Origin: Chlorokybus atmophyticus
Lineage: Eukaryota > Plantae > Mesostigma and Chlorokybus algae
Direction of reading: 5' to 3'
Length of the DNA: 64,000 bases
Assembly (NCBI GenBank): GCA_009103225.1
Contig: RHPI01002048.1
Span: 819,036-883,035 of the forward strand
The notes under the pieces: model-generated
What the model was told of the DNA's origin: nothing
What the model saw: the letters and a program-made list of their open reading frames with translations, nothing else
Database searches by the model: none
Translations under genes and position numbers: made by a program
Shown here: piece after piece, positions 36,523-61,489 of the stretch
Position numbering within the stretch: position 1 is the stretch's first letter
Layout: every line of letters starts with the position of its first letter

Positions 36523-36881
36523 TGTTAAGAGCTAGTGATGCGCCTAGTGTGTGTATTTGCCTCTTACATACAAGTGTGCACACACTAAGGACAAGTGCAG
36601 CAAGCACGCCAACTATGGAAACAAAGTGCGACCCACTGTATTAAGCAGTATACAGTGTCTTATATACTATGCTAGCAAGCACTAGTCAACTCTAGTCAAC
36701 TCTGGTCAAAGTCAACACCAATCAACATTGGTTAACGGTCAAAGTGAAAGTTGACCATGGTTGACCATAACTGCCGTAACTACGGTAACTCTCACAACTC
36801 CCGTAACGATTTAGCTGATCGCACCATCTACATGTAGGCGCCGCCTATACATGTACTTTCTACAACCTATAACATTTAACA
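36523..36881 (-). mobile_element. Solo LTR of the gag-only (TR-GAG-like) family
   Basis: TGTTAAGAGCTAGTGATGCGCC...CATTTAACA, colinear with the family LTRs. No flanking PBS/PPT and no clean TSD. Confidence 0.8.
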
Positions 36882-38326
36882 GCTATGTTCGCACATTGAA
36901 CATGCTGTCATAATGTACTGTTATTGCAGCATGAGATGAACAAGTTGGTCAATGCATACATGGACAGAGGCCTAACACTGAGCAAGGATTGCAGCAGCTT
37001 GGTGGAAGTGGTGCTCAGGTGAGTTTAACATGCGATTGCAACACCTAAGCTCTCAAAAAAAAGCTTTACTCATGCTCTGTTGGCCTGATGCCACCTCAGG
37101 TCCATTTGCCGCAATTTTTGAAGAAGACACTGAAGCAAGTGCGAGCTGCTCCCGTATGTCATATCAATGTACCGAGTGGTGCTTAGCACACAAGTTGTAT
37201 GGCTTGACTTCCTCTTAATTGGAGTTGTACGTCCTTGTGCTTGTGCATGAGTGTGCGGTGTCTACAAGCACGTAGGTGAGTAGCAATGTTTAATTGGTAT
37301 GGGCGCCATACTACAATTGCATCGCTTGCAATTATTGGCGTGTGCACCAGCTGCATTATGCATGTGTGGCTTGCATGCACAGCATGGTACAGTCTCATGC
37401 TGTTGTTGCATAGCCGTTGGTAGTTTAAATTGCTGCCTAGTACCGTGCATACGTGTCCATAGAAGGTGTGGGCCTTGTTTACGCTTAGACTGTGTGCTTT
37501 ATGCGCATTTTGCTGCCATGAGTGGCCTTGTTTATGCACTTGCTTGCTGCACTTGCTGCGCATATGTGCACGTGTGTATTGGCAAGCGTGCGCATGCGTG
37601 CATATAATATGCGGCTATTCTAGCTGCACGCACACTTGCTTGCTCAACATAGGCCATGTTCCATGTATATTAAACATTGGTTGTGTGCGTTTAAAGTTTG
37701 TGGGTGCTTCGCAAAAACGGTTGCATAATGTTGCACTAGATGCGCGAGTGCTTACGTTGCAGCTGTAGCGGTGACACCGTGTGGTGGTAGTCCAACCCAT
37801 AGTTTGATGGCTGAGTAGCTCCGTGCAGCACGTGAGGAGGTATTTTGTGTTGAAATTGGTGTCATAACCCCTCCATAATCGATAGCTATGGTAGTCACAA
37901 TGTGTGAGCAAGTAGCCATTGAAGGTTGCAACAAGTTGTTGTATAAACATGAGGCGGACATTGCATGTTTACATTTGCTAAGAGTTGACCATTCAGTGTG
38001 ACATGTTGATGCGTCTGTACATATAATGCAACATGGCCTTAAGTGTAGCCATAAGGCTATCGCTATTGCTTACGCATGCTCTCGTATATGAGGGGCATGA
38101 CCAAAGCAAAAAGCCATGCCATACGGCATGCAACAGGGATTGCCATTGAGTAGTTGCTTCATTGACCTTATCATACATGAGCAACGAGCTCATGATGACT
38201 TGATGTTCCATTCATCTTAATGCTAGTAGAATGAAAGTGGGGAGGAGCAACACTTGTTGTTAAGTCTGAAAAGTATCTCTATTAAGAGAGGTATGCAAGT
38301 TGCTACTAAAGTGGCTAGGTCCACAT

Positions 38327-41300
38327 TGTTGAGAATTAATGATGCACTTAGTGTGTGTGCATGTGCCTCGCACATACAATTATGCACACTTTAAGGATAA
38401 GTGCAACAAGCACGCCACTTATAAGAATAATGTGTGACCCATAGTATAAAGCAGCCTACAGTTTCTTATATACTATGCTACTAAGCACTAGTCAACTCTA
38501 GTCAAAGTCAACACTATTTAGCAGTAGTTAATGGTTGAAGACGACGATCATAATCAAAGGTGACCACGGTTAACCATAACTCCTATATCTCTTGTAACTC
38601 CCGTTTCTATGAAGGTTAAACTGATCACACCAACTACATACAGGCGCCGCCTATACATGTACTTACAACAATCTATAGCTTTTAACACTCCCATACGAGC
38701 AGCTTGACCTTGAACTCTAAGTTTTTCTTGCAAGCTTACTCGCATTAACTTATTCGACTCAACACTCTCACGGATGTGTTGCTCCCACTCCATAACACCA
38801 TCTTTCCTCACGTGCTGCCAGCAGGACTACAAGGTTTAAATACTCCTTGTTTCCTCTTCATAGTTGTCGCATCAGGTTTTACCACGCCACGCTTGACATT
38901 GCTCAGGTGGTTTCAAAGACTCTTTCAATGGCAACCTATGCTATACATTACATGGAGTTCTCTACCATAGCAATTCTGCACCAGAGTGTAGGCCATGTAA
39001 GGGTTGAACAGACCCTTCTACTAAAGGCAGCACCCCTCCCATCTCTTGTTAGCTAGCTATACAACTCAGTCCTTGTATGCCAATCAAGTGAAGTGCTCTA
39101 ACCAGTATCGCACACCTATGTGCCACCAAACAACTCCACAATAATGCAACCTCTAATGTATGAAGCTCTACACCAACAACTACTCATGGGCTAGCAGTAA
39201 CTCTCACAGACCTTTCTTTTTGCGACCTTCGTCTATGCATGTCCTTCACGCGCGCTTGCAGTGGGAGAGGGCGGACAGACACCATCCACTACAACTCCTT
39301 GAGGTCGTCATCAATTTTAGGAGGCAATCGCCAACGTGGCATGCTCCTCTTTGGTTGCCTCATTGTGGATCCTTTTCTGGCGCGCGCCAATGAAGTGGGC
39401 CTTCATCTTGCAGTAGTGACACTCTTTGCCATATGATGGCTTCCCACCACCTGCTTTGCTCCTGCTTCGTGTGTGTTGAGAACTTTAATCAGCAAGTGCG
39501 ACAGGTTATCCACCATTTCTCTATCCCGTGAACATCCAACTTGCCCTCCACAGCTAGCAGCTTGGGCACTACATCAGCAAACTTAAAACCACTTTGAGAA
39601 CTCCAACACAATCACTAGCGTAGCAAAGCTCTTTTATAAGCCAGCTAAGACTGCCCACATCACCTCTTCTTCCTTCCCCCATTGTAGCCCACTGCTGCAA
39701 GGTCTTGCCAAAGCTCCCTTGCACGCGATATATACTACTGGACTGGCTCCTTGTGCTCCATCTTTGAAGATGTCAGCTCGCGTCTTAGCTGCGACTTGCG
39801 CAAGTTGTTGTTGGCCTTAAAGAGGGTGTTGAAGACCTCCCACGCCTCACGTCCAGTCTTGCAATCCGTAATAAGAGGGAGATGGAAGTCTTGTATGTGC
39901 AAGCCTATCAGCGCAAAAGCTAATTGTGAGTTCTCTGTGTAGGTATTAGTGTCACATGTCCTTGGCCGCAATGATGTGGAGGAGGTGGGGTCGACAAAAC
40001 TCTAGAGCTCTTGCGGATCAGCATCAACTTCATCTTTGACAACCATGAAGCATTGTTGTGTAGATCAAGGGACTCGATGGGCATCCTATCTATGTCAGCT
40101 ATTGCTTGCTACACAATAGTGCAGCTCACCCTATCCCCAAGAACACTCCACTAACATGCGCCTATGCTCAACACTTTCCCTCACTAGCTTAAGCAATCTC
40201 ATAAGCAAGTGTGGGCCCATAACCTGGTAAGAACTACTGATGCGCCGTGTGTGTGTGTGTATGTGCATCTCACATATAAGTGTGCGCACACTAGGGACAA
40301 GTGCAGCAAGCACGCCAACTGTAAAGACAATGTGCGACCCATTATAATAAGTAGTATACCGTATCTTATATACTATGCTACTAAGCACTAGTCAACCCTT
40401 TGTCAACACTAGTCAACACTAGTCAATGGTCAAAGTCAACAGTCATAATGAAAGTTGACCATGGTTGACCATAATGGCGGTTGACCATAATTGCTATAAT
40501 TGTTATAACTCTCGTAATTCCCGTAGCTATCAAGGTTAAGCTCATCATACCAACTATATGTAGGCGCCGCCTACGCATGTACCTTCAACAACTTATAATC
40601 TTTAACACTCCAATGTGAGCAGCTTTACCTTGGATTCTAAATTGTTTTTTGCAAGCTTACCAACATCAATCTACTCCATTTAACAAGCCTGTGGGAGCAA
40701 CACTCTCATGGATGTGTTGCTCCCACAGACTTGATGCTTGTCCATATGACATCATCCTTCTCCTCATGCTGCCGGCAGGGCTACAAGGTTCCAATACTCC
40801 TCGGTTCTTCCTCGTAATTATTGCATCAGGCTCCACCACGCCATTCCTAACATTGCTCAAGTGGTTTTGACACTCCTTCAATGCCAAACCATGCTATAAA
40901 CTACACTAAATTCTTCACCTTAGCGATGCTGTACCAGAGTGTAAGCCGTACAAGGTTGATCAGGGTTGATCTACCAAGGAAAGCACCCCTCCCATCTCCT
41001 GATAGCTAGCTATACGGTTTATTCCTTGCATGCAATTTAAGTAAAGTGCTATACTCGGCACCGCACATCCATACATACTACCGAAATCAACTCCATAGCA
41101 ACACAACCTATATTTTATGCAGCTCAACACTAGCAACTACTCATAGGCTAGCAGTAACTTTCTCAGACCTTTGTGTCTACGACCTCCATCAACGCATGTT
41201 TTTCACGCCCCCTTGCAGTGGGATAGGACAGATGAACACCATACATTGCAATTCCTTGAGGTCCTCATTAATGCTGAAAAGTGATCGCCATCGGGGCATG

Positions 41301-42547
41301 CTCCTCCTTTGTTGCCTCACCGTGGATCCTGTTTTGGCACTCGCGAATGAAGTGGCCCTTCATCTTGCAATAGTGACACTCTTTGTCACATAATGGCTTC
41401 CCACCACCTGCTTTGCTCCTGCTTCGTGTGTGTTGAGAAGATAAGGCAGCAAGTGCGATAGGTTCTTCACCATTCTCTATCTCCTGAACATCCAACTTGC
41501 CTTCCACAACTAGCAGCTTAGGCACTACATTAGCAAACTTTCAAACCACATCTGAGGACTCCAACACAGTCACTAGCGTAGCAAAGCTCTTTCCTAAGCC
41601 AGCTAAGACTGCCCACATCACCTCCTCTTCCTTCACATCGTGGCCCACTGCTGCAAGGTCTTGCCAAAGCTCCCTTGCACGTGATATGTACTTCTGGATT
41701 GGCTCTTTGTGCTCCATCTTCAGAAGTGTCAGCTTGCGTCTCAGCTGCAACTTGCGCGAGTTGCTGTTGGCCTTGAAGAGGGTGTCGAAGACTTCCCACG
41801 CTTCACGTCCAGTCTTACAATCCGCAATAAGAGGGAGATGGAAGTCTTTGACGTGCAAGCCTATCAGCGCAAAAGCTGATTGTGAGTTCTCTCTCCAAGT
41901 ACCAGTGTCACCTGTTCTTGGCCGCAATGATGTGGAGGAGGTGGGATCGACAAAACTCCAGAGCTTCTTGCGGATCGGCACCAACTTCATCTTCAGCGAC
42001 CATGAAGCGTAGTTGTGCAGATCAAGGGACTCGATGGGCATCCTATCTGTGTCAGCCATTGCTTGCTACACAATAGTACAACTCACCCTCTCCCCAAGAA
42101 CACTCTACTAGTAGGCGCCTATGCTCAACAATTTCTTTCACTAGCACAAGCAATCACACAAGCGAGTGTGGGCCCATAACCTGTTGAGAACTAGTGATGC
42201 GCCTAGCGTGTGCCTAGGAGGCAAATAGACAAGTGCAGCAAGCACGCCAACTAAAGAGACAATGTGCGACCCACTGTATTAAGCAGTATACAGTGTCTTA
42301 TATGCTATGCTACTAAGCACCAATCAACTCTAGTCAATTCTGGTCAAAGTCGACACTAGTCAGCACTGGTCAATGGTCAAAGTCAACGGTCAGAGTCAAA
42401 GTTGACCATAATTGACCATAACTGCCGTAACTGCCGTAACTCTCCTAACTCTCGTAACTCCCATAACTATAAAGGTTAAGCTGATCGTACCAACTACATG
42501 TAGGCGCCACTTATACTTGTACTTTCAACAAGCTATAACATTCAACA
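38327..42547 (-). mobile_element. Tandem LTR-internal-LTR-internal-LTR array of two degenerate gag-only LTR retrotransposons
   Basis: LTRs at 38327-38687, 40225-40607 and 42182-42547. PBS GGTTATGGGCCC next to the second and third LTR. Broken gag ORFs (39735-39971; 41268-42059). No pol. Outer flanks CACAT/GTTAA do not form a TSD. Confidence 0.85.
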
Positions 42548-45500
42548 GTTAATCACCAACCCGCACAATGCTGCATCCGCTGTCACCACGGCCAGCGTAG
42601 AGGCATGCTCACCCTTTGAGCTGGCAGCAAATAGGAAGTCACCGATATATGGCAGAACGCTAATGCCTTGTATACGCCAATGGCGGACCAATTGCTTTAT
42701 TACATTTGTGAACACAAAGCACGCCGTGCTCATCCTTAATGGCAACGAGCAAAAGTTGTACACTTTGCCCGCGATCGAGAACTATAAATAGCCCTGGAAG
42801 GCGGGTTGTATGTCCATTTATTGGTATCCGGACTTTAAGTCTGTGGAGAACAACCAGTCCTCGGTCTGCAGCAAGTCCGTGATGCTGCGTACATCTTCAT
42901 ACTTGAACGGCGCGCTCACCAAGTAGGAGTTAACACAGCGCAAGTTTATAGTTAGGCGCAGCTTGCGGCCATCATTGACCACAATGAGTGGGGATTTTAC
43001 ACACACTTGTGCGGCCCCACTATGCACTAGATTAGCAATGGCAGCCGCAGTAAAGTCCGCATACTCATGCACACCCTTGTGGTTGGTCAATGCCCACTCC
43101 GAGGGTAGGTGAGCAGCCCATGGTAGTTCGTACCCGTATTCCACCCATGAGAGCACCATAATAGGCTCATAAATTTCATGCCATACCGGTAGGGCATCAC
43201 GCAGTTGATCTCACATATAAGGCCTCTTAACGATGAGGTTGGCAAGGACACGAGCAACCTAATGGTGCTTTATCCTGCCGTGCACAAGGTCCTCTTCCGT
43301 AACAATGTACATCACTACATACCACCATTGCTACTATGAGCGCATGTCAGCCCCCTCAACACACGTGCGTGTGCATTCGAATGCGCACACAAACACAACA
43401 TTTGCACATAATGTCGGAGTTAAATGAGCACCGCCTTATTGTGAAGCTGCTGGCCTCACAAAGTCAGCCACCAAGTTGCAGGTCATTAGGGCCTCATTCA
43501 TATTGCGACCTTCATATGGCAGTTTGCATCTTCATATCTTGCTCAATATGTGTTAGACACTGATTATGTTTTGTTTTGCATGATGCCATCCGCCTCATTG
43601 CAATGGTCTCAAAGTTCCATTCGGGGGCGTTTAAAGACCCCTAGCAAAAGTTACAAGTAAAGTAGCCATTTTGCTTTGGATAACGAAATTAGCACTTTTA
43701 TTCACTAAGCTTGGAGTTTTATTACTAAGGCAGCAGTTGCGAACATCGAAAGGTGCCCCACTGGGTTGTAGCATCAACAAGTGTACAAAGATTAGGCTGC
43801 CACAGCAGTTGCAGAGTTCTGCTATTGAACTTGTGGCCACCACGTTCTGCTGAGGGCTTGCAGCAATGGGCACGCAAGTGCCCCGTCTCTCCACAGCTGT
43901 AGTTGGTGCAAGAGTCACGTTGGCCCCCCATAGGAGCGGCCTAAGACTGCATAAGAGCGATCCTTTAACTGGTATGCCCCGCACCAGTTGCATAAAACTC
44001 AAAGTAGCGCGGGGGGGGGGGGGGGGGGGGGGNGAAGAGTGTAGGCCGCCTTTGCCTTGGGCTTGGGTTGCGCCGCAGCCGCCTCCTTGATTGCCTTTGC
44101 GAGGAGATTTGCCTCTGCATCGACCATAGCTAGAGGGTCTCTCGTGAGCTCCTCCACCACCTTCCAACTATGCTTGTTGGCGACTTCCACATGGTAGAAC
44201 CGCGTGCACACCTCGTCTAGCGCTTGTGCACAGAGCATAGTTCAGGAACATTGGTTGCAGGCATTCATATTCAGGCTCGCAGCCATTAGGTTAACGTCAG
44301 ACGCACCCACATTGGCATCACCACCACATACATGACATGCAAATGCAAACCTGTTGTGCAATCAACCTTGCTGTGTACATTATATATGATAGTCATAATG
44401 TGAGTACAGAGGTGGACATGCATGCGTGTTAAGTGCGGGTCCTCCCCCCTCACCGAAGATTGGGGGATGAGGAGTACGGAACAAATGTATTGATATAGGT
44501 GTCTGTGTATACATATAAATGCCTCTACATCGACAATGGGCCAGCCTTCATAAGGCCTATAATGGGCGAATGTGCATGTGTTGACGGGTGAGGTCCGCAC
44601 ACTCATGCATTTCTACATGTATGCACGTGCTTTATAATAAATGAGCCCACCTCTCATGTTCTCTATGCTGTCTTTGGTGAAGTGGGGATCATTGACGAGG
44701 TGCGCAGGCGCAAGACCGAACAAAGCCGCCAATGAGACAATATACGCCGCCACATTGATGTGTTGCCTAGCCCGCTTCATTTTGTTCTCTATTTAAGGGA
44801 CCACGAGATCTTTAAAGCAAGTGGCCAGTGCCTCCGCAAGAGCATTGGGTGTGGTGGAGTCGCCTTTGTCGCGATGAAGGATGCTTACATGAAGCGGGTA
44901 GTTGGGCTCGTCAACCGGCTTATTGCAAGGGATGGCGGGCGCCTTCCCACGCTTGAGGCGCATAATCTCCGCCTCCAACTCCTCCAACCTCCTTACTATG
45001 GCCTCCGTGGGTGTCATGAACGGGGTGCAAGAAGTAGAGAGCGGGCTTGCCTTCCTCTTCTTACGCTTGTACTTGATAAAGGGCGGGTCCTCATCGTCCT
45101 CCTCTTCCTCGCCACCATTGTCACTCTCCTTATTTACCTCAAGGGAGAGGTGCCCCTCCCCATGGGGAGGCGCACCTCTCCCTTCTCCCTCGCCGCTCTC
45201 CTCTCCTCCGTCTCACTCAAGGTGTGGCGACGCGAATTTGTAGCCCGCGCCGACCTATAAGCGGTAAGCCTAGCCGCCACGGTGGTGGCTTCCACGCTGT
45301 GACCATCATCAAGGGCACTTGCTTATATCCGGGTTGGAGGCATGGTGGAAGGCCGACCCTCCCCTACCTCCTCACCACACTCACTACCCACTACAGGTGG
45401 CGCCGCTGTGCTAGGGTTTAGAGCGACTAGATGAGGAGCTTGTGACTCGCAACTCACTCTAGTGAGTTGCGGGTCACCAAGTGCCTAGGGCACTAGGGGC

Positions 45501-45590
45501 ACAAGAGTCTCATAACTCATTAATGAGTTTTTGAGTTCATGAGCACGCATTTTATGCGCTTCATGATCTCATGTGACTCGAAGGGGATCT
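42548..45590 (-). mobile_element. DIRS-like (tyrosine-recombinase class) retrotransposon remnant: spliced gag-like ORF with a degenerate zinc knuckle and the N-terminal half of RT
   Basis: VLSWVEYGYELPW...SPLIVVNDGRKLRLTINLRCVN...FKYEDV...FSTDLKSGYQ and YNFCSLPL...VFTNVIKQLVRHWRIQGISVLPYIGDFLF are DIRS1-type RT motifs (YIDD decayed to YIGD). The knuckle reads CGETGHLRAHC. RT is cut by the LTR at 42547. No RNase H or YR was seen. Confidence 0.75.
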
Positions 45591-45593
45591 GAA

Positions 45594-46053
45594 TTGTGTA
45601 AGCCATTGCTTGCTACACAATAGTAAAACTCACCCTCTCCACAAAAACATTCTACTAGGAGGCTTCTATGCTCATCTAGGGTTAGTCTAGATTCTCTCAC
45701 TAGCACAAGCAGTCATACAAGTGAGTGGGGGCCTATAACTTGTTGAGAACTAGTGATGCGCCTCTCTCACCTACAAGTGTGCACACACTATAGAGACAAT
45801 GTGCGACCCATTGTAGTTTGCAGTACACAGTGTTTTATATACTATGCTATTAAGTACTAGTCAACTCAAGTTGAAGTAAACACCCGTCAACACTACTCAT
45901 AGTCAATGATCAAATTCAATGTTGACCATGGTTTACCAAAACAATGCTCATAATTGCCGCAACTCCTATAACTCTCGTAACTCCCATGTCTGTTAATGCT
46001 CAGTTGATCATACCAATCTTTTACCTTCAACAACCCGTAACCTTTGATAAACA
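45594..46053 (-). mobile_element. 5' LTR plus leader fragment of the gag-only family (truncated copy)
   Basis: Decayed LTR at ~45741-46053, decayed PBS, and leader up to the gag ATG region (AGCCATTGCTTGCTACACAATAG). Confidence 0.75.
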
Positions 46054-47355
46054 AATATGCTATGCTGGTAGGTAGAGTATCAACAAAAGAGTGTGTGTGT
46101 GTGTGTGTGTGCATATTTGCGTGCAATGTCAGCGGTGCCCACTTGTATTTAACGAAATTTGTTAGCTACCAGATTCCACCCATGTATTGGCTTACAAGCG
46201 ATGAGACGCTTGCGTGCCTTGTGCGTGTCTCTATGCTTGTTGCCAACGGCAGCACCAGTATTAATGTGTATATTCGTATGTGTCAGCAAGCCCCCTCCCC
46301 ACCCATAATTTCCCCTAAGTGTGCTAACAAATAGCAACACTCCCGCTCTCAGCTTCTTGAACATCTAACAGCTGTTGACTAACTATTTTATGAGTGACCT
46401 GCAAGCACAATTGCTGGAGAATTACACTTATTATGCAAGTGCTTATTATAATAACAACAATAGTGCTGATGCGTCAGTGCCCGCTCCCTCTTTTTATCCC
46501 TTATGGTTACTACAAAAGTAAGCAACTGCCTGTGTGACTTACGTGCACGGCGGCTAAAAAGTCACGTTCGTTATGCTAATACCTGCTACAACAGTCATGA
46601 CACAGCTGCTGCGTTAGCGCCCCCTCCCCCTTTCAATCCCTTAGCATCATCATAGCAGGTGAGCAACTGCATAGTATGTGACTTGCGTGCATAGTTGAAG
46701 AGTTATGTTTATTGGGTAGGTGCTTACTGCAACAGCACACAACATGGTAGCTGGGACAATGCCCCCTCCCCCTCCTCCTTCTCATGTGACATGGCTTGTG
46801 CACAAGAAGATACGGATGATCACGATGTTCAGCACGATAAGGATAACTTATATCATACTGCCTTATATGCTATAATTACAAAAATGACATTCTAAGTATT
46901 CCCATGCAACCATTAGTGAAAGGATTGACACTAGATAATGGACCGGACGCGGGGAGCTAAAGTGGTCAACACATAGAGGGTATACACTGACGTAATGAAG
47001 TAATCTTACAGTTATAGCTTGTGTATACATACTACACAATGCATTTATAGTCACAAGCACGCATGCATGTCGCGGGCATAAGGTTGAGAACTAGTGATGC
47101 GCCTAGTATGTATTTGCCTCCAGCATACAAGTGTGCACACACTAAGGACAAGTGCAGCAAGCACGCCAACTCTAGAGACAATGTGCGACCCACTGTATTA
47201 AGCAGTATACAGTGTCTAATATACTATGCTACTAAGTACTAGTCAACTCTAGTCAACTCTGGTCAAAGTCAACACTAGTCAACACTAGTCAATGGTCAAA
47301 GTCAATGGTCGAAGTCAAAGTTAAGCATGGTTGACCATAACTGCCGTAACTCCCG

Positions 47356-49688
47356 TGTTAGATGTTATAGCTTGTTGAAAGTACATGTATAGGCGGCGCC
47401 TACATGTAGTTGGTACGATCAGCTTAACCTTTATAGTTACGAGAGTTACGAGAGTTACGGGAGTTACGGGAGTTACGGCAGTTATGGTCAACCATGGTCA
47501 ACTTTGACCTTGACCGTTGACTTTGACCGTTGACTAGTGTTGACTAGTGTTGACTTTGACCAGAGTTGACTAGAGTTGACTAGTGCTTAGTAGCATAGTA
47601 TATAAGACACTGTATACTGCTTAATACAGTGGGTCGCACATTGTCTCTATAGTTGGCGTGCTTGTTGCACTTGTCCTTAGTGTGTGCACACTTGTATGTA
47701 AGAGGCAAATACACACACACTAGGCGCATCACTAGTTCTCAACAGGTTATGGGCCCACACTCGCTTGTGTGATTGCTTGTGCTAGTGAGAGAGAGTGTTG
47801 AGCATAGGTGCCTACTAGTAGAGTGTTCTTGGGGAGAGGGTGAGTTGTACTATTGTGTAGCAAGCAATGGCTGACACAGATAGGATGCCCATCGAGTCCC
47901 TTGATCTGCACAACTACGCTTCATGGTCGCTGAAGATGAAGTTGGTGCCGATCCGCAAGAAGTTCTGGAGTTTTGTCGATCCCACCTCCTCCACGTCATT
48001 GCGGCCAAGAACAGGTGACACTGGTACTTGGAGAGAGAACTCACAATCAGCTTTTGCGCTGATAGGCTTGCACGTCAAAGACTTCCATCTCCCTCTTATT
48101 GCGGATTGTAAGACTGGACGTGAAGCGTGGGAGGTCTTCGACACCCTCTTCAAGGCCAACAGCAACTCGCGCAAGTTGCAGCTGAGACGCAAGCTGACAC
48201 TTCTGAAGATGGAGCACAAAGAGCCAATACAGAAGTACATCTCGCGTGCAAGGGAGCTTTGGCAAGACCTTGCAGCAGTGGGCCACGATGTGAAGGAAGA
48301 GGAGGTGATGTGGGCAGTCTTAGCTGGCTTAGGAAAGAGCTTTGCTACGCTAGTGACTGTGTTGGAGTCCTCAGATGTGGTTTTGAAGTTTGCTGATGTA
48401 GTGCCTAAGCTGCTAGCTGTGGAAGGCAAGTTGGATGTTCAGGAGATAGAGAATGGTGGAGAACCTATCGCACTTTCTGCCTCATCTTTTCAACACACAC
48501 GAAGCAGGAGCAAAGCAGGTGGTGGGAAGCTATTACGTGACAAAGAGTGTCACCACTGCAAGATGAAGGGCCGCTTCATTCGCGAGTGCCAAAAGAGGAT
48601 CCACGATGAGGCAACCAAGGAGGAGCACGCCACGATGGCGATTGCTTTCTAGCAATGGTGAGGACCTCAAGGAGTTGCAGTGGATGGTGTTCGTCCGTCC
48701 TCTCCCACTGCAAGGGCGCGTGAAGGACATGCGTAGACGGAGGTCGCAGACACAAAGGTCTGTGAGAGTTACTGCTAGCCTATGAGTAGTTGCTGGTGTT
48801 GAGCTGCATACACTAGAGGTTGCATTGCTGTGGAGTTGTTTTGTGGTAGCACACAGGTGTGCGGTACTAGTTAGAACACTTCACTTGATTAGCATGCAAG
48901 GACTGAGTTGTATAGCTAGCTAACAGGAGATGGGAGGGGTGCTTCCTTGGTAGAAGGGTCTGATCAACCCTTGCACGGCCTACACTCTGGTACAGCATTG
49001 CTAAGGTAGAGAACTCAGTGTAGTTTATAGTATAGTTTGCCATTTAGGGAGTCTTCGAAACCACCTGAGCAAGGTCAGGCGTGGCGTGGTGGAACCTAAT
49101 GCGACAACTATGAGGAGTAAACAAGGAGTATTGGAACCTTGTAGTCTTGCTGGCAGCACGAGGAGAAGGATGGTATCATGGAGACAAGCATCAAGTCCGT
49201 GGGAGCAACACATCCGTGGGAGTATTCAAAGGAGTAAGTTATTGTGGGTAAGCTTGCTAGAAGATCTTGAAGTTCAAGGTCAAGCTGCTCGCGTGGGAGT
49301 GTTAGATGTTATAGCTTGTTGAAAGTACATGTATACGCGGCGCCTACGTGTAGTTGGTACGATCAGCTTAACCTTTATAGTTACGAGAGTTACGAGAGTT
49401 ACGGGAGTTACGGGAGTTACGGCAGTTATGGTCAACCATGGTCAACTTTGACCTTGACCGTTGACTTTGACCGTTGACTAGTGTTGACTAGTGTTGACTT
49501 TGACCAGAGTTGACTAGAGTTGACTAGTGCTTAGTAGCATAGTATATAAGACACTGTATACTGCTTAATACAGTGGGTCGCACATTGTCTCTATAGTTGG
49601 CGTGCTTGTTGCACTTGTCCTTAGTGTGTGCACACTTGTATGTAAGAGGCAAATACACACACACTAGGCGCATCACTAGTTCTCAACA
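47356..49688 (+). mobile_element. Intact gag-only LTR retrotransposon (TR-GAG-like), 2333 bp
   Basis: 389-bp LTRs at 47356-47744 and 49300-49688 (2 differences seen). PBS GGTTATGGGCCCAC at 47745. PPT CTCGCGTGGGAG. 5-bp TSD TCCCG at 47351-47355 and 49689-49693. Confidence 0.93.
47867..48652 (+). CDS. gag: Copia-type Gag protein (261 aa), stand-alone
   Basis: Uninterrupted ORF MADTDRMPIESLDLHNYASWSLKMK...KEPIQKYISRARELWQDLAAVG...CHHCKMKGRFIREC...AF*. It is colinear with the Gag part of the autonomous Copia at 57158-61009. The knuckle His is Arg here and intact (CHYCKMKGHFIREC) in sister copies. Confidence 0.9.
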   Translation: MADTDRMPIESLDLHNYASWSLKMKLVPIRKKFWSFVDPTSSTSLRPRTGDTGTWRENSQSAFALIGLHVKDFHLPLIADCKTGREAWEVFDTLFKANSNSRKLQLRRKLTLLKMEHKEPIQKYISRARELWQDLAAVGHDVKEEEVMWAVLAGLGKSFATLVTVLESSDVVLKFADVVPKLLAVEGKLDVQEIENGGEPIALSASSFQHTRSRSKAGGGKLLRDKECHHCKMKGRFIRECQKRIHDEATKEEHATMAIAF

Positions 49689-52600
49689 TCCCGTACCTCT
49701 CCTAACTCTCATAACTCCCGTAACTATAAAGGTTAACCTGCTTGTACCAACTACATGTAGGCGCCGCCTATACATGTACTTTCAACAAGCTATAACATCT
49801 AACACTCCCACGCGAGCAGCTTGACCTTAAACTCCAAGTTCTTCTCGCAAGCTTACCCACATTAACTTACTTCATTGAACACTCCCACGCATGTATTGCT
49901 CCCACGGACTTGATGCTTGCCTCCATGACACCATCCTTCTCCTCGTGCTGCCAGCAGGACTACAAGGTTTCAATACTCCTTGTTTCCTCCTCATAGTTGT
50001 CGCATCAGCTTCCACCACGCCACGCCTGACCTTGCTCAGGTGGTTTCGAAGACTCCCTCAATGGCAAACTATGCTATAAACTACACTGAGTTCTCTACCT
50101 TAGCAATGCTGTACCAGAGTGTAGGCCGTGCAAGGGTTGATCAGACCCTTCTACCAAGGAAAGCACCCCTCCCATCTCCTGTTAGCTAGCTACACAACTC
50201 AGTCCTTGCATGCCAATCAAATGAAGTGTTCTATCCAGTACCGCACACCTGTGTGCTACCAAAAAACAACTCCACAGCAATGCAACCTCTAGTGTATGCA
50301 CCTCAATACCAGCAACTACTCATAGGCTAGCAGTAACTCCCACAGACCTTTGTGTCTGCGACCTCCGTCTACGCATGTCCACCAATGCTAGAAAGCAATT
50401 GCCATCGTGGCGTGCTCCTCCTTGGTTGCCTCATCGTGGATCCTCTTCTGGCACTCGCGAATGAAGTGGCCCTTCATCTTGCAGTAGTGACACTCTTTGT
50501 CACGTGATGGCTTCCCACCACCTGCTTTGCTCCTGCTTCGTGTGTGTTGAGAAGATGAGGCAGCAAGTGCAATAGGTTCTCCACCATTCTCTATCTCCCG
50601 AACATCCAACTTGCTTGCGACTTGCGCGAGTTGCTGTTGGCCTTGAAGAGGGTGTCGTAGACCTCCCACGCCTCACGTTCAGTCTTGCAATCCGCAATAA
50701 GAGGGAGATGGAAGTCTTGACGTGCAAGCCTGTCAGCTCAAAAGCTGATTGTGAGTTTTCTGTCCAGGTACCAGTGTCACCTGTTCTTGGCCGCAATGAT
50801 GTGGAGGAGGTGGGATCGATAAAACTCCAGAGCTTCTTGCGGATCAGCACCAACTTCATCTTCAGCGACCATGAAGCGTAGTTGTGCAAATCAAGGGACT
50901 CGATGGGCATCCTATCTGTGTCAGCCATTAATTGTTACACAATAATACAACTCACCCTCTCCCCAAGAACACTCTACTAGAAGGCGCCTATGCTCAACAA
51001 TTTCTCTCATTTCTCTCACTCACACAAGCGAGTGTGGGCCCATAACCTGTTGAGAACTAGTGATGCGCCTAATGTGTGTTTGCCTCCTACATACAAGTGT
51101 GAACACACTAAGGACAAGTGCAGCAAGCACGCCAACTACAGAGACAATGCGCGAACCACCGTATTAAGCAATATACAGTGTCTTATATACTATGCTACTA
51201 AGTACTAGTCAACTCTAGTCAACTCTGGTCAAAGTCAACACTAGTCAACACTAGTCAATGGTCAAAGTCAACGGTCAAAGTCAAAGTTGACCATGGTTGA
51301 CCATAACTGCCGTAACTCCCGTAACTCTCCTAACTCTCGTAAGTCACGTAACTCTGCAGGTTAAGCTGATCGTATCAACTACATGTAGGCGCCGCCTATA
51401 CATGTACTTTCAACAAGCTATAACATTTAACACTCCCACGCGAGCAGCTTGACCTTGAACTCCAAGTTCATCTCGCAAGCTTACCCAAGTTAACTTACTC
51501 CATTGAACACTCCCACGGATCAATTGCTCCCACGGACTTGATGCTTGTCTCCATGACACCATCTTTCTCCTCATGCTGCCAGCAGGACTACAAGGTTCCA
51601 ATACTCCTTATTTCCTCCTCATAGTTGTCGCATCAGGTTCCACCACGCCACGCCTGACCTTGCTCAAGTGGTTGCGAAGACTCCCTCAATGGCAAACCAT
51701 GCTATAAACTACATCGAGTTCTCTACCTTAGCAATGCTGTACCAGAGTGTAGGCCGTGCAAGGGTTGATCAGACCTTCTTACCAAGGAAAGCACCCCTCC
51801 CATCTCCTGTTAGCTAGCTATATAACTCAGTCCTTGCATGCCAATCAAGTGAAGTGTTTTAACCAGTACCGCACACCTGTTTGCTGCTAAAAACAACTCC
51901 TCAGCAATGCAACCTCTAATGTATGGAGCTCAACACCAGCAACTACTCATAGGCTAGCAGTAACTCCCACAGACCTTTGTGTCTGCGACCTCCGTCTACG
52001 CATGTCCTTCACGCGCCCTTTACAGTGGGAGAGGATGGACAAACACCATCCACTGCAACTCCTTGAGGTCCTCACTAATGCTAGAAAGCAATTGCCATTG
52101 TGGCGTGCTCCTCCTTCATTGCCTCATCGTGGATCCTGTTTTGGCACTCGCGAATGAAGTGGCCCTTCATCTTGCAGTAGTGATCACTTTTTGTCACGTA
52201 ATGGCTTCCCACCACTTGCTTTGCTCCTGCTTCGTGTGTGCTGAGAAGATAAGGCAGCAAGTGCGATAGGTTCTCCACCATTCTCTATCCTGAACATCCA
52301 ACTTGCCTTCCACAGCTAGCAGCTTAGGCACTACATCAGCAATCTTTAAAACTACATCTGAGGACTCCAACACAGTCACTAGCGTAGCAAAGCTCTTTTC
52401 TAAGCCAGCTAAGACTGCCCACATCACCTTCTCTTCCTTCACATTGTGGCCCACTGCTGCAAGGTCTTGCCAAAGCTCCCTTGCACGCGAGATGTACTTA
52501 TGGATTGGCTCTTTGTGCTCCATCTTCAGAAATGTCAGCTTACGTCTCAGCTGCAACTTGCGCGAGTTGCTGTTGGCCTTAAGGAGGGTGTCGAAGACCT

Positions 52601-53375
52601 CCCACGCCTCACGTCCAGTCTTGCAATCCGCAATAAGAGGGAGATGGAAGTCTTTGACGTGCAAGCCTATCAGCGCAGAAGCTGATTGTGAATTCTCTGT
52701 CCAGGTACCAGGCTCACCTGTTTTTAGCCGCAATGATGTGGAGGAGGTGGGATTGATAAAACTCCAGAGCTTCTTGCGGATCAGCACCAACTTCATCTTC
52801 AGCGACCATGAAGCGTAGTTGTGCAGATCAAGGGACTCGATGGGCATCCTATCCGTGTCAGCCATTGCTTGCTACACAATCATACAACTCACCCTCTCCC
52901 CAAGAACACTCTACTAGTAGGCGCCTATGCTCGACACTTTCTCTCACTAGCACAAGCAATCACACAAGCGAGTGTGGGCCCATAACCTCTTGAGAACTAG
53001 TGATGCGCCTACTGTGTGTGTATTTGCCTCTTACATACAAGTGTGCACACACTAAGGACAAGTGCAGCAAGCACGCCAACTACGGAGACAATATGCGACC
53101 CACTATACTAAGCAGTATACAATGTCTTATATACTATGCTACTAAATACTACTCAACTCTAGTCAACTCTGGTCAAAGTCAACACTAGTCGACACGAGTC
53201 AATGATCAAAGTCAATGGTCAAAGTCAAACTGACCATGGTTGACCATAACTCCCGTAACTCCCGGAACTCTCCTAACTCTCGTAAGTCCCGTAAGTATAA
53301 AGGTTAAGCTGATTGTACCAACTACATGTAGGCGCCGCCTATACATGTACTTTCAACAAGCTATAACATTTAACA

Positions 53376-53789: not shown

Positions 53790-54182
53790 TGTTGAGAGAT
53801 TGCACAGTAGCAAGCTAAGCACACAATGCACAAAGTGTGGCGCCAAGAAACAAAGCAAAGTGGATCTAGTGTAATAAGCAACACACAGTGGCTTATATAG
53901 TACACTAGTCAACCATAAGTGGTACTAGTCAAAGTCAACACTAGTACACAATGGTCAAAGTCAAAGCGTGACTTCTGTAACGGCAGTTGACCGTAACTCC
54001 CGTAACCTCCATAACTCCCGTAGCTCCTTTAACCACTAATTAAAGTCAAAGGTTGACCAGAGTTGACTTGTAACGACTGTAACCGCCGTTTGACCATAAC
54101 TGCTAAAAGATAAGTTGATCGTAGAAAAGTGACACGAAGATAATGGCTGACTCCATTCCTTCAACATCCCCACGCGAGCAAC

Positions 54183-56765
54183 TTAACCTTGTAGTCCAAG
54201 TCCACCGCAGCAGGTTTTGAACTTGTTGGGTGGAAGTGGCTTGGTCATGCAGTCAGCTAGCATGTCCTCTGTACTGCAATACTTGAACTCCACTTCACCA
54301 CGTGCAACTCTCTCTCTCACCATGTGGTGCATAATGTCAATATGCTTTGTCCTGGTGGATGTGATGGGGTGCATACTCAACTTGATTGCGCCCTGGTTGT
54401 CACAAAGGATTGTGACACAGCTCAGTGCATGTCCCAAGTCAGTAATAAGCTTGCGAAGCCACAATGCTTCCTTTATTGCAGATGAAGCCGCCATGTACTC
54501 AGCCTCAGTGGTTGATGCAGCAACGGTAGGCTGTAGTCGGCTGTTCCAGCTGACGACGCCTCCTCCCATTAGGAAAGTGTATCCTGTGGTAGACCTCCTT
54601 GTGTCGAGGTCCCCCGCATAGTCCGCATCACAATAACCCTGTAATGCAATGTCTGTTGTCCTCCCAAATGTGATACCCACGTTCAAGGTGCTGCCAAGGT
54701 AGCGAAGAACTCCTTTTGCCGCCCTCCAGTGCTCCATGGTTGGTGCTGACATGTGTCTCGCCAAGACTCCCACGGCTTGTGCGATGTCAGGCCTCGTGCT
54801 GATGGACAAGTAGATGAGGCTCCCAACTAGCTCACCATATGGATATGTAGCCTTGTCAAGCACAGTGGTAGTGTCCTGTGCCTTGAGTAGATGTACTCCC
54901 ACGCTCAGTGGTGTTGCCTTGCCCTTGGCGTCTTGCAACTTGAACTTCTTAAGTACATCCAAGACCATCTGCTTCTGGGTGATCTTGATTGTCCTTGCAA
55001 CTCTGTCTCTGGTGATGACAATGCCGAGAAACAAGCGTGCATCGCCAAGATCTCGAACCTCAAAAGCAGATTGCAGTGTTACCTTGATGTGTGACATCGC
55101 TGCAGTGTCGTTTGATGCCAAGATGATGTCGTCCACGTACACCAGCAACCACACTTGGCTGTCCTTACTGATGAAGAGCCCGGGATCTGATGATGACTGC
55201 TGAACGCCCATCTTCTCTAGCTCCTTGCTGAGCCGAATGTGCCAGACTCTTGGCGCTTGCTTAAGCCCATAAAGAGCCTTATGTAACAAGCAAGCCTTTC
55301 CTGAGCCTCCCTCCTCGTAACCTTGAGGTTGCTGCACGTAGATCTGCTCATCCAACTCTCCATAGAGAAAAGCGGTCTTCACGTCCAGGTGGTGCAGCTC
55401 CAAGTCCTCTACAGCAACCTTTGCAAGTAGCGACCTGAAGGTTGTGTGCTTACTGGCAGGCGCAAACACCTCCTTGTAATCAACGCCCTCCTCCTGTAGG
55501 AAACCCTTTGCCACAAGTCGCGCCTTGTAGCGCTCAATGTTGCCCTTGCCGTCACGCTTGATTTTGTACACCCACTTGACAGGTATAGGCTTGACGCCTT
55601 GTGGAACCTGCTCAAGTACCCAAGTCTTGTTGGCGTGTAGCGAAGCAATCTCCTCATCCATGGCCTTGCGCCACAACTCAGCATCTGGAGCTGTATTGGC
55701 CTCATGGTAGGTGCTTGGCTCCTTCTTCTCAGTGGTTTCAGCGCTCATGGCCTGGAACCTTTGGTAAAATCGAGGTGGCGCTCTGTTTCTCATAGGGTAG
55801 CGCCTCTCCTGCTCATCCACAGGTGCAATCTCGTCCTCCTCAAGGTGTGGCGCACCATTAGGAACCTCCACGTTGGCAGATGGTATGGTGATGACCTCTG
55901 GCTCCTCAGCAAGGTCATTGTTCACAGGCGTAGAAGGTGTTGTTGGTGAAGTCGCCACCATCTTCTCGTCGAAGACAACATCCCTTCGAACCACAATCTT
56001 CTTGCTGTCCTCAAGCAAGATCCTGTATGCCTTGGAGTTGGGCTCGTACCCGACAAAGACACCCATCTCCCTCACGTTCTCAAGCTTCCTTCTTAGCTGC
56101 TTGTGGATGTGTGGATACGCCTTGGCTCCAAACACACGCATGTGCGTCACATCAGGCTTTGCACCGTAGAACAACTCCCACGGGGTCTTGGCTTTGTTGC
56201 TCGTAGGTGACCTGTTGCGGATGTAATTGGCCGTGACAAACGCCTCAGCCCACAAAGCTTTTTCCAGCTTTGTATCTGTAAGCATGGCACGCACGCGCTC
56301 AACAAGCGTGCGGTTGAGACGCTCTGCAGCACCGTTTTGCTCAGGGGTGTAGGGTGCAGTAGTCTCATGCTTGATGCCGTGCTCATCCAGGTAGCTCTTC
56401 AAGGTGTGGTTGAGATACTCAGAGCCTCGATCACTTCTCAACGCCAACACCTTTGTCTTTGCTTGTGTAGCCAGCTGAGTGAGTGTCCTCTTAACTACAG
56501 CAGCAACATCCGACTTCGCAGCAACTGGAATGATAGCAGACAGCTTGCTGAAGTCATCTATGAAAGTGGCAACGTACCAACTCCCTCCAGTGGACGCAAC
56601 TGGCATGGGACCGCACACATCCATGTGCACGAGCTGCAAGGGTGCTGTACTGGTGCGGGAAGAGGTAGGAAAAGGCTGCCTAGGCATTTTGCTCAGCACG
56701 CACGTCTCGCACAAATCACCTTTTACTGCCTTGATGTCCTCCGCTTTGATGTTGATCCCTTCCAT
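54183..56765 (-). CDS. Gag/protease-less Copia ORF: partial integrase, RT and RNase H (860 aa), with a junction-created ATG
   Basis: Open from the ATG at 56765-56763 (MEGINIKAEDIK...CETC...LVHMDVCGP...LRSDRGSEY...LLVYVDDII...GYCDADYAGD) to TAA at 54183. About 15 substitutions versus the full copy. Confidence 0.8.
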   Translation of the reverse strand: MEGINIKAEDIKAVKGDLCETCVLSKMPRQPFPTSSRTSTAPLQLVHMDVCGPMPVASTGGSWYVATFIDDFSKLSAIIPVAAKSDVAAVVKRTLTQLATQAKTKVLALRSDRGSEYLNHTLKSYLDEHGIKHETTAPYTPEQNGAAERLNRTLVERVRAMLTDTKLEKALWAEAFVTANYIRNRSPTSNKAKTPWELFYGAKPDVTHMRVFGAKAYPHIHKQLRRKLENVREMGVFVGYEPNSKAYRILLEDSKKIVVRRDVVFDEKMVATSPTTPSTPVNNDLAEEPEVITIPSANVEVPNGAPHLEEDEIAPVDEQERRYPMRNRAPPRFYQRFQAMSAETTEKKEPSTYHEANTAPDAELWRKAMDEEIASLHANKTWVLEQVPQGVKPIPVKWVYKIKRDGKGNIERYKARLVAKGFLQEEGVDYKEVFAPASKHTTFRSLLAKVAVEDLELHHLDVKTAFLYGELDEQIYVQQPQGYEEGGSGKACLLHKALYGLKQAPRVWHIRLSKELEKMGVQQSSSDPGLFISKDSQVWLLVYVDDIILASNDTAAMSHIKVTLQSAFEVRDLGDARLFLGIVITRDRVARTIKITQKQMVLDVLKKFKLQDAKGKATPLSVGVHLLKAQDTTTVLDKATYPYGELVGSLIYLSISTRPDIAQAVGVLARHMSAPTMEHWRAAKGVLRYLGSTLNVGITFGRTTDIALQGYCDADYAGDLDTRRSTTGYTFLMGGGVVSWNSRLQPTVAASTTEAEYMAASSAIKEALWLRKLITDLGHALSCVTILCDNQGAIKLSMHPITSTRTKHIDIMHHMVRERVARGEVEFKYCSTEDMLADCMTKPLPPNKFKTCCGGLGLQG

Positions 56766-57157
56766 GTTGAGAGATTGCACAGTAGCAAGCTAAGCACACA
56801 ATGCACAAAGTGTGGCGCCAAGAAACAAAGCAAAGTGGATCTAGTGTAATAAGCAACACACAGTGGCTTATATAGTACACTAGTCAACCATAAGTGGTAC
56901 TAGTCAAAGTCAACACTAGTACACAATGGTCAAAGTCAAAGCGTGACTTCTGTAACGGCAGTTGATCGTAACTCCCGTAACCTCCATAACTCCCGTAGCT
57001 CCTTTAACCACTAGTCAAAGTCAAAGGTTGACCAGAGTTGACTTGTAACGACTGTAACCGCCGTTTGACCATAACTGCTAAAAGATAAGTTGATCGTAGA
57101 AAAGTGACACGAAGATAATGGCTGACTCCATTCCTTCAACACTCCCACGCGAGCAAC

Positions 57158-60100
57158 TTAACCTTGTACTCCAAGTCCAACGCAGCAGGTTTTGAACTTG
57201 TTGGGTGGAAGTGGCTTGGTCATGCAGTCAGCTAGCATGTCCTCTGTACTGCAATACTTGAACTCCACTTCACCACGTGCAACTCTCTCTCTCACCATGT
57301 GGTGCATAATGTCAATATGCTTTGTCCTGGTGGATGTGATGGGGTGCATACTCAACTTGATTGCGCCCTGGTTGTCACAAAGGATTGTGACACAGCTCAG
57401 TGCATGTCTCAAGTCAGTAATAAGCTTGCGAAGCCACAATGCTTCCTTTATTGCAGATGAAGCCGCCATGTACTCAGCCTCAGTGGTTGATGCAGCAACG
57501 GTAGGCTGTAGTCGGCTGTTCCAGCTGACGACGCCTCCTCCCATTAGGAAAGTGTATCCTGTGGTAGACCTCCTTGTGTCGAGGTCCCCCGCATAGTCCG
57601 CATCACAATAACCCTGTAATGCAATGTCTGTTGTCCTCCCAAATGTGATACCCACGTTCAAGGTGCTGCCAAGGTAGCGAAGAACTCCTTTTGCCGCCCT
57701 CCAGTGCTCCATGGTTGGTGCTGACATGTGTCTCGCCAAGACTCCCACGGCTTGTGCGATGTCAGGCCTCGTGCTGATGGACAAGTAGATGAGGCTCCCA
57801 ACTAGCTCACCATATGGATATGTAGCCTTGTCAAGCACAGTGGTAGTGTCCTGTGCCTTGAGTAGATGTACTCCCACGCTCAGTGGTGTTGCCTTGCCCT
57901 TGGCGTCTTGCAACTTGAACTTCTTAAGTACATCCAAGACCATCTGCTTCTGGGTGATCTTGATTGTCCTTGCAATTCTGTCTCTGGTGATGTCAATGCC
58001 GAGAAACAAGCGTGCATCGCCAAGATCTCGAACCTCAAAAGCAGATTGCAGTGTCACCTTGATGTGTGACATCGCTGCAGTGTTGTTTGATGCCAAGATG
58101 ATGTCGTCCACGTACACCAGCAACCACACTTGGCTGTCCTCACTGATGAAGAGCCCGGGATCTGATGATGACTGCTGAACGCCCATCTTCTCTAGCTCCT
58201 TGCTGAGCCGAATGTGCCAGACTCTTGGCGCTTGCTTAAGCCCATAAAGAGCCTTATGTAACAAGCAAGCCTTTCCTGAGCCTCCCTCCTCGTAACCTTG
58301 AGGTTGCTGCACGTAGATCTGCTCATCCAACTCTCCATAGAGAAAAGCAGTCTTCACGTCCAGGTGGTGCAGCTCCAAGTCCTCTACAGCAACCTTTGCA
58401 AGTAGCGACCTGAAGGTTGTGTGCTTACTGGCAGGCGCAAACACCTCCTTGTAATCAACGCCCTCCTCCTGTAGGAAACCCTTTGCCACAAGTCGCGCCT
58501 TGTAGCGCTCAATGTTGCCCTTGCCGTCACGCTTGATTTTGTACACCCACTTGACAGGTATAGGCTTGACGCCTTGTGGAACCTGCTCAAGTACCCAAGT
58601 CTTGTTGGCGTGTAGCGAAGCAATCTCCTCATCCATGGCCTTGCGCCACAACTCAGCATCTGGAGCTGTATTGGCCTCATGGTAGGTGCTTGGCTCCTTC
58701 TTCTCAGTGGTTTCAGCGCTCATGGCCTGGAACCTTTGGTAAAATCGAGGTGGCGCTCTGTTTCTCATAGGGTAGCGCCTCTCCTGCTCATCCACAGGTG
58801 CAATCTCGTCCTCCTCAAGGTGTGGCGCACCATTAGGAACCTCCACGTTGGCAGATGGTATGGTGATGACCTCTGGCTCCTCAGCAAGGTCATTGTTCAC
58901 AGGCGTAGAAGGTGTTGTTGGTGAAGTCGCCACCATCTTCTCGTCGAAGACAACATCCCTTCGAACCACAATCTTCTTGCTGTCCTCAAGCAAGATCCTG
59001 TATGCCTTGGAGTTTGGCTCGTACCCGACAAAGACACCCATCTCCCTCACGTTCTCAAGCTTCCTTCTTAGCTGCTTGTGGATGTGTGGATACGCCTTGG
59101 CTCCAAACACACGCATGTGCGTCACATCAGGCTTTGCACCGTAGAACAACTCCCACGGGGTCTTGGCTTTGTTGCTCGTAGGTGACCTGTTGCGGATGTA
59201 ATTGGCCGTGACAAACGCCTCAGCCCACAAAGCTTTTTCCAGCTTTGTATCTGTAAGCATGGCACGCACGCGCTCAACAAGCGTGCGGTTGAGACGCTCT
59301 GCAGCACCGTTTTGCTCAGGGGTGTAGGGTGCAGTAGTCTCATGCTTGATGCCGTGCTCATCCAGGTAGCTCTTCAAGGTGTGGTTGAGATACTCAGAGC
59401 CTCGATCACTTCTCAACGCCAACACCTTTGTCTTTGCTTGTGTAGCCAGCTGAGTGAGTGTCCTCTTGACTACAGCAGCAACATCCGACTTCGCAGCAAC
59501 TGGAATGATAGCAGACAGCTTGCTGAAGTCATCTATGAAAGTGGCAACGTACCAACTCCCTCCAGTGGACGCAACTGGCATGGGACCGCACACATCCATG
59601 TGCACGAGCTGCAAGGGTGCTGTACTGGTGCGGGAAGAGGTAGGAAAAGGCTGCCTAGGCATCTTGCTCAGCACGCACGTCTCGCATAGATCACCTTTTA
59701 CTGCCTTGATGTCCTCCGCTTTGATGTTGATCCCTTCCACCACCATGTCCTCAGCCACCAGTCTTGCCAGGTTGTCCCATCCAAGATGTCCAAGTCTTCC
59801 GTGCCAAAGATGAGCTTTGTCCGATGCAGTGACTGTCGCAGACAACGCATGCTGCCGAACCAGTGTGATGCAGTACAAGCTCTCTTGCAATGTGCCCTCC
59901 ACAACAACAATGTTGTTCACCTTGACTTGACACTTCTGAGCAGTGAAGTCAACTTTGGCGCCTGCGCTTGTAGCTCTTCGAACGGAGAACAGGCTGGAAG
60001 CTAATCCTGGCACATGGATCACCTCCTTCAGGGCCACTTCGTGTGTAGCGCCCGCCACCACAGTGTGTAGGATGACGGTGCCCACTCCCACAGCTTGCAA

Positions 60101-61009: not shown

Positions 61010-61489
61010 GCTTCCCTTGCTAGGTTGCAATGAAGACGGCGCCTCCCCAAGCTAATCACCAACTTGTTATCCTATTGTGTAGCTAGTGCTAGTGTGGGCC
61101 CATAACCTGTTGAGAGATTGCACAGTAGCAAGCTAAGCACACAATGCACAAAGTGTGGCGCCAAGAAACAAAGCAAAGTGGATCTAGTGTAATAAGCAAC
61201 ACACAGTGGCTTATATAGTACACTAGTCAACCATAAGTGGTACTAGTCAAAGTCAACACTAGTACACAATGGTCAAAGTCAAAGCGTGACTTCTGTAACG
61301 GCAGTTGACCGTAACTCCCGTAACCTCCATAACTCCCGTAGCTCCTTTAACCACTAGTCAAAGTCAAAGGTTGACCAGAGTTGACTTGTAACGACTGTAA
61401 CCGCCGTTTGACCATAACTGCTAAAAGATAAGTTGATCGTAGAAAAGTGACACGAAGATAATGGCTGACTCCATTCCTTCAACACCTAC

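Follow-up and report, generated by a model that had tools for sequence, protein, structure and literature searches.

How does a retrotransposon that encodes nothing beyond Gag come to insert, and where would its enzymes come from? The question is raised by a 64,000-nt stretch of the Chlorokybus atmophyticus genome (GenBank assembly GCA_009103225.1, contig RHPI01002048.1, positions 819,036 to 883,035), here called the window and numbered from its first letter. It holds element E (47356-49688), a complete element bounded by long terminal repeats (LTRs) with gag as its only gene, together with older copies of the same family and a neighbouring autonomous Copia element (Table 1). We consider it likely that this family is a non-autonomous member of the Ty1/copia type belonging to the gag-only terminal-repeat elements (TR-GAG), with Pol supplied in trans and with the lineage of the neighbouring Copia element (53790-61484) as the best candidate helper.

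Element E was delimited by self-BLAST against the window, direct reading and LTR alignment. In agreement with the sequence-only reading, made earlier from the letters alone, it was found to be complete, with near-identical LTRs that run from TG to CA and show two mismatches, at positions 37 and 49 (99.5% identity), and with a perfect TCCCG target-site duplication (TSD). It is nested, in plus orientation, inside an LTR of an older minus-strand copy of its own family, the halves of which lie at 47083-47355 and 49694-49804. After removal of the element and one copy of the TSD, the joined halves align to the other LTRs of the family, and the junction carries no indel. Element E bears the signature of a gag-only cDNA inserted by integrase, and this clean paralogous empty site is the strongest evidence for such an insertion. 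Given the TSD, the near-identical LTRs and the seamless empty site, the youngest copy of the family transposed in its gag-only form; it is the sole proven transposition in this window. The 5' LTR carries TATATAAG at 47599-47606, and its U3 region includes short tandem repeats and 12 TTGAC/GTCAA words. Both a primer-binding site (PBS) and a polypurine tract (PPT) had also been claimed for the element; both are present, but the PPT is short (GGGAG only, 49295-49299, inside a conserved block of about 35 bp) and the PBS is not of the type that pairs with a tRNA 3' end.

Protease, integrase and reverse transcriptase are absent from element E, as had been noticed before, according to a domain search and three further comparisons. 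In a tblastn search, the 1290-aa polyprotein of the neighbouring Copia matched only with its residues 13-261 (Gag), in element E as in every other copy; 100 Copia polyproteins, compared with all copies by tblastn, gave scattered chance matches on both strands, none of them colinear; and when the 647-bp 3' internal region was set against the neighbour by tblastx, a match appeared only over the last ~33 bp beside the LTR. A pol remnant in this 647-bp region was rejected, as neither tblastx nor tblastn gave a colinear match there. The filler between gag and the PPT block matched no Rfam family, and its predicted RNA folding was no better than that of shuffled sequences (z -0.03).

The single intact open reading frame (ORF) reported for element E was confirmed and is its only long sense ORF. 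Its product matches Pfam PF14223 (gag polypeptide of LTR copia-type) over profile positions 1-168 of 172 with an E-value of 2e-29, and more weakly PF03732 (E-value 5e-6) and DUF4219. Towards its C-terminus lies a zinc knuckle in which the zinc-binding His has become Arg (codon CGC at 48572, CAC in copies A-D), turning CCHC into CCRC, whereas all four dead copies have kept the canonical C-X2-C-X4-H-X4-C motif. Two residues after the first Cys of the knuckle, element E has His and the dead copies have Tyr. Among the five internal regions of the family, gag is intact in element E only.

Self-BLAST and a profile search recovered four further gag-only internal regions, an isolated LTR with no recognisable internal region and a truncated copy, all of which the sequence-only reading had listed. 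The four regions are colinear with element E over its full length at 84-93% identity and all lie on the minus strand, in two arrays of alternating LTRs and internal regions. Some 30 bp of PBS and leader beyond the split LTR imply that array 2 was once longer. The LTRs of array 2 share about 92-94% identity and those of array 1 about 78-81%, and the units differ too much from one another to be assembly duplicates. In the LTR alignment each old LTR is nearest to that of element E, as expected if element E was copied recently from a source lineage that changes slowly and the others have been decaying. Copy A is a mosaic, with 96-100% identity to element E in a tract of ~700 bp (positions 400-1100 of element E, comprising the leader and the 5' two thirds of gag) and 76-88% in the rest. 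The pattern suggests gene conversion with a young family member or its cDNA as the donor, and it further confounds conclusions drawn from distances. TSDs were found neither around the arrays nor around the isolated LTR (the flanks of the latter are CTTTC and GCTAT), array 2 being truncated and uninformative in this respect. The segment between the isolated LTR and array 1 (36882-38326) proved unrelated to the family by tblastn and profile search. Unrelated sequence also lies between array 1 and the truncated copy (42548-45568), where a minus-strand ORF (42818-43159) resembles a retroelement polymerase fragment.

Since five colinear copies across about 5-20% divergence have it, the gag-only layout is inherited and did not arise as a one-off deletion. 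The earlier suggestion of an amplified family is upheld in this sense, but the extra copies are units of arrays and not independent insertions.

Table 1. Positions, in the window, of element E, its relatives and the neighbouring autonomous Copia element.
Feature	Position	Strand	Remarks
Left TSD (TCCCG)	47351-47355	+	Same as 49689-49693; within the AGTTACGGG repeat of the host LTR
Element E	47356-49688	+	2333 bp; gag-only copia-type LTR retrotransposon
5' LTR of E	47356-47744	+	389 bp; starts TGTTA, ends CAACA
PBS (GGTTATGGGCCCACACT)	47745-47761	+	Identical across the family and in the neighbouring Copia (alignment)
gag ORF	47867-48652	+	261 aa; sole ORF of E
Zinc knuckle	48548-48589	+	aa 228-241; C-X2-C-X4-R-X4-C in E
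3' internal filler	48653-49265	+	~610 bp, non-coding; in all family copies, absent from the autonomous Copia
Conserved block ending in PPT GGGAG	49266-49299	+	89% identical to last pol codons and PPT of the autonomous Copia
3' LTR of E	49300-49688	+	389 bp
Right TSD (TCCCG)	49689-49693	+	Direct reading
Isolated LTR	36522-36881	-	No recognisable internal region
Array 1	38327-42547	-	LTR, B, LTR, A, LTR
Internal region B	38688-40229	-	Colinear with E
Copy A	40230-42547	-	In array 1
Internal region A	40608-42181	-	Colinear with E
Truncated copy	45569-46046	-	LTR, PBS, leader, first 38 nt of gag
Array 2	47054-53375	-	LTR, C, LTR, D, LTR interrupted by E; breaks off after a further ~30 bp of PBS and leader
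Distal part of LTR split by E	47054-47355	-	Includes ~30 bp of PBS and leader (47054-47082)
Internal region D	49805-51047	-	Colinear with E; two deletions in gag
Internal region C	51433-52989	-	Colinear with E; gag with two frameshifts
LTRs of array 2	51048-51432, 52990-53375	-	Plus remainder of the split LTR, 49694-49804
gag of copy E			Intact ORF
gag of copy A			No indels; one premature stop, stop codon lost
gag of copy B			Many lesions; copy heavily decayed
gag of copy C			Two frameshifts
gag of copy D			Two large deletions
Autonomous Copia, candidate helper	53790-61484	-	Three-LTR tandem inside one TSD (CCTAC)
Polyprotein ORF of candidate helper	57158-61030	-	Intact, 1290 aa; gag, beta-barrel/protease region, integrase and reverse transcriptase domains

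TR-GAG elements were defined by Chaparro et al. (2015, PMC4350172) as being shorter than 4 kb and without pol, with LTRs, a PBS, a PPT, a 5-bp TSD and a single Gag ORF that often has PF14223 and a zinc finger. They were searched for as direct LTRs of more than 200 bp within a window of 1-6 kb, with UBN2/PF14223 or Retrotrans_gag as the Gag Pfam domains, and were described from Coffea (TR-GAG1-5), banana and cacao; four families were predicted for the brown alga Ectocarpus, and none was found in a red alga or Drosophila (PMC4350172). Element E has every structural feature of this list, namely the LTRs, the size, the PBS, the PPT, the 5-bp TSD and the single Gag ORF, with no reverse transcriptase, integrase or protease, and it resembles the published elements also in its PF14223 Gag with a zinc knuckle. 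Published families further comprise several copies with evidence of activity, such as transcription or young insertions; the window, for its part, shows five colinear internal regions and one young insertion. The proposal of a gag-only TR-GAG-type family in an alga is supported, with Chlorokybus atmophyticus as the host, and the family is an algal example of the described class and not a new kind of element. Such elements had been said to be known mainly from angiosperms; the papers mentioning TR-GAG indeed concern angiosperms, but a brown alga had already been reported (PMC4350172), and our literature search found no TR-GAG report from green or streptophyte algae. Of the characters of Ty1/copia elements, the copia-type Gag, the TG..CA ends and the 5-bp TSD are present and a pol of protease, integrase, reverse transcriptase and RNase H is missing; because there is no pol at all, element E is a derivative and not an autonomous member of Ty1/copia. 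Differences from published TR-GAG lie in the streptophyte host, the apparent priming site, the arrangement of the copies in arrays, and the adjoining candidate helper, which has matching cis signals and a Gag of 41% identity.

The PBS adjoins the CA end of the LTR without a gap and lacks a TGG start. Within a GGGCCC context it includes a complement to a CAU anticodon, which appears to fit the anticodon arm of the eukaryotic initiator methionine tRNA (tRNA-iMet), and by this analogy it looks like a PBS of the anticodon-arm tRNA-iMet type; no tRNA gene is present in the 64-kb window for comparison. Such 'half-tRNA' priming is known for Drosophila copia, yeast Ty5 and some Copia lineages (PMC10886601, PMC5371799). 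Drosophila copia and yeast Ty5 likewise have a PBS that is apparently complementary to the anticodon arm of tRNA-iMet, with the complement of CAU, but both are autonomous, in contrast to the family described here.

The neighbouring Copia element lies ~4 kb from element E and has the layout LTR-internal-LTR-internal-LTR, with 377-bp LTRs that show one to three differences; with two differences between the LTRs of element E, both are of similar age. One of its internal regions is complete, with the 1290-aa ORF, and the other lacks gag and protease, having an 865-aa ORF that begins at polyprotein residue 427, and the named relatives of its polyprotein belong to the green lineage (Haematococcus, Klebsormidium, angiosperms). 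The prior view that the Gag of element E is only moderately similar to that of this neighbour holds, with 41% identity; the nucleotides of the two gag sequences are 52% identical and their third codon positions 37.5%, which means saturation. The LTRs of both elements reach 62% identity in a global alignment (shuffles: mean 43%, maximum 47%) and share the TGTT start and the TCTCAACA end. All 17 nt of the PBS are identical, and the PPT block of about 35 bp is 89% identical, overlapping the last pol codons of the neighbour, the ORF of which stops 16 bp before the LTR. An nhmmer search with the family profile matched the neighbour colinearly from LTR to gag (E-value 1e-58). TTGAC/GTCAA words amount to 12 per LTR of element E and 11 per LTR of the neighbour, compared with 4 per kb in the window. 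Those in U3 lie in short tandem repeats (AGTTACGGG x5.6, GTTGACTAGT x6) in element E (47435-47585, 49379-49529) as in the LTRs of the neighbour (e.g., the LTR at 61108-61484). TTGAC is the core of the plant W-box, and the TTGAC-rich U3 may be a transcription-factor landing pad common to both elements.

Judged by these alignments, LTR, PBS and PPT block of the family are clearly homologous to those of the neighbouring Copia. After neutral evolution since the split of the two Gags, similarity should no longer be recognisable, and the cis elements would therefore either have been kept by selection, through recognition by helper enzymes and shared transcription factors, or have been gained by later recombination. 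Either origin makes the Copia lineage of the neighbour the best candidate helper, and we infer that this lineage probably supplies the missing enzymes. The sharing of LTR termini, PBS and PPT with an autonomous element recalls BARE-2 of barley, the large retrotransposon derivatives (LARDs) and the terminal-repeat retrotransposons in miniature (TRIMs), which likewise rely on an autonomous partner and conserve LTR ends, PBS and PPT as recognition sites for its proteins (PMC4350172). However, BARE-2 lacks a functional Gag and uses that of BARE-1, and LARDs and TRIMs code for nothing, whereas the family of element E is the converse case, with gag kept and pol lacking.

A quick maximum-likelihood tree of 70 Gag regions, the phylogeny that the sequence-only reading had proposed as a check, placed element E and copy A as a pair on a long branch among full-length Copia polyproteins. 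This pair is not sister to the neighbour, which groups with protein P0006 (support 98), and falls with P0046, a Klebsormidium protein and three short proteins (support 86), a weak grouping not to be relied on. Against 1.84 billion representatives, HMMER gave a best identity of 46% among matches longer than 200 aa and 48% for one fragment of 118 aa, and identities did not exceed 43% either in a word search (proteins of 143-457 aa) or against the Gag portions of 95 Copia polyproteins. No pol-bearing protein closer to this Gag turned up in these libraries (maximum 46% over more than 200 aa), which evidently do not hold Chlorokybus transposable-element proteins and are weak on that genome. By these comparisons the Gag of the family is a distinct lineage. 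The 'old independent lineage' of the sequence-only reading is accordingly correct for gag, with its 41% identity and its position in the tree, but not for the LTR, PBS and PPT block, which are shared with the neighbouring Copia.

The earlier assumption that Gag is retained for packaging the RNA of the family was not supported. Pairwise dN/dS (ratio of non-synonymous to synonymous substitution rates) by the NG86 method ranged from 0.33 to 0.63 across the gag copies, values biased by an excess of transitions, since ~70% of the substitutions among copies are transitions, with decay directed from GC to AT. A codon model (IQ-TREE, GY+F3X4) with free omega, run on the copies in the window, yielded an omega of 0.74 (kappa 7.0, log-likelihood -1724.35), compared with a best log-likelihood of -1725.64 for omega fixed at 1; twice the difference is 2.6 (p ~0.11), and neutrality is not rejected by what is a weak test, since most differences among copies arose by decay after insertion, a process that is neutral whether or not the protein has a function. 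In the pairs E-C and E-D, gag has diverged at about the rate of the non-coding LTR and filler, four of the five gag copies are broken, and the private gag changes of element E, the youngest mobile copy, are six non-synonymous to two synonymous, the zinc ligand among them. All of this would suit a gag ORF that is a decaying relic, with the RNA packaged by helper Gag via cis signals in the manner of LARDs or TRIMs and the own Gag idle. We hold this explanation to be possible though unlikely, given the low power of the omega test on mostly post-insertion decay and given that both a full-length match to PF14223 and the canonical CCHC knuckle persisted in the family ancestor despite a long branch (~1 change per site) from pol-bearing relatives.

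The lack of significant constraint on gag and the private changes of element E count against the preferred explanation of a trans-mobilised family, and so do three further points. The Gag of the candidate helper is only 41% identical, which makes co-assembly of the family's Gag with the helper Gag-Pol uncertain; other Copia families of the Chlorokybus genome might have the same PBS and LTR ends; and just one insertion is proven in the window, the array ends being devoid of TSDs and array 2 truncated. The clustering of all older copies within 17 kb, in one orientation and as LTR-internal-LTR arrays without TSDs, would even be compatible with local tandem duplication and recombination of one deleted Copia, with no retrotransposing family at all. 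Element E, however, is inverted relative to the cluster and has its own TSD, LTRs of 99.5% identity and a seamless empty site, which renders this explanation highly improbable. By analogy with the Ty1 p22 copy-number control or with Gag-derived restriction factors, the Gag of the family might instead act as a competing or poisoning capsid protein against autonomous Copia; a divergent Gag (41%) expressed together with the helper from similar LTR promoter motifs would be indirect support. We give this idea very little credence, as the gene lies between LTRs with no sign of host domestication, many copies have decayed and constraint is not detectable.

The preferred reading of a family mobilised in trans by a Copia helper would imply the following life cycle. 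Transcription would start from the LTR of element E, with its TATA box and TTGAC-rich U3, giving an RNA that would carry the PBS, the gag ORF, the filler and the short PPT. An autonomous Copia would provide protease, reverse transcriptase, RNase H and integrase in trans, the best candidate source being the lineage of the intact and equally young element at 53790-61484, with which LTR ends, U3 motifs, PBS and PPT block are shared. Integration would create the 5-bp duplication, after which inserted copies would persist and multiply locally as LTR-internal-LTR arrays via recombination between LTRs, and family copies would exchange sequence by gene conversion.

LTR retrotransposons with three LTRs or in tandem, arising by unequal recombination between LTRs, are known from plants and from Ty1 multimers. 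The same head-to-tail order of LTR-internal-LTR-internal-LTR is seen here, in the neighbouring Copia even inside a single TSD, but with three such structures within 25 kb (38327-42547, 47054-53375 and 53790-61484), and such arrays may be more frequent than usual in Chlorokybus. A further reading, which we regard as rather doubtful, combines such habitual tandems with a mosaic parasite, the cis signals of which track one autonomous Copia lineage and the Gag of which comes from a long-separated lineage. If the mosaic is real, private capsids would capture foreign Gag-Pol or would compete with the helper; if the tandems are habitual, parasite and helper in Chlorokybus would enter or persist via cDNA or LTR recombination and not as simple single copies made by integrase.

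Elsewhere in the window, pieces of host genes were recognised at 14778-15476 (minus strand; NAA35-like TPR repeats) and 28326-28997 (plus strand; POT1A-like OB fold), and an exon at 21503-22909 (plus strand) is 100% identical over 302 residues to the Chlorokybus protein jgi/Chlat1/8488 (EukProt). The window contains an assembly gap of 935 N at 23019-23953, which accounts for the low-GC bin and the four-frame ORFs there, and a single N at 44033, with no other N runs.

With element E, the published range of TR-GAG, comprising angiosperms and one brown alga, is extended to one of the earliest-branching streptophyte algae, which suggests that the gag-only strategy is old or has arisen repeatedly in the green lineage. 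A young parasite beside a young, intact candidate helper, with like cis signals and an unlike Gag, offers a compact system for studying the requirements of trans-mobilisation.

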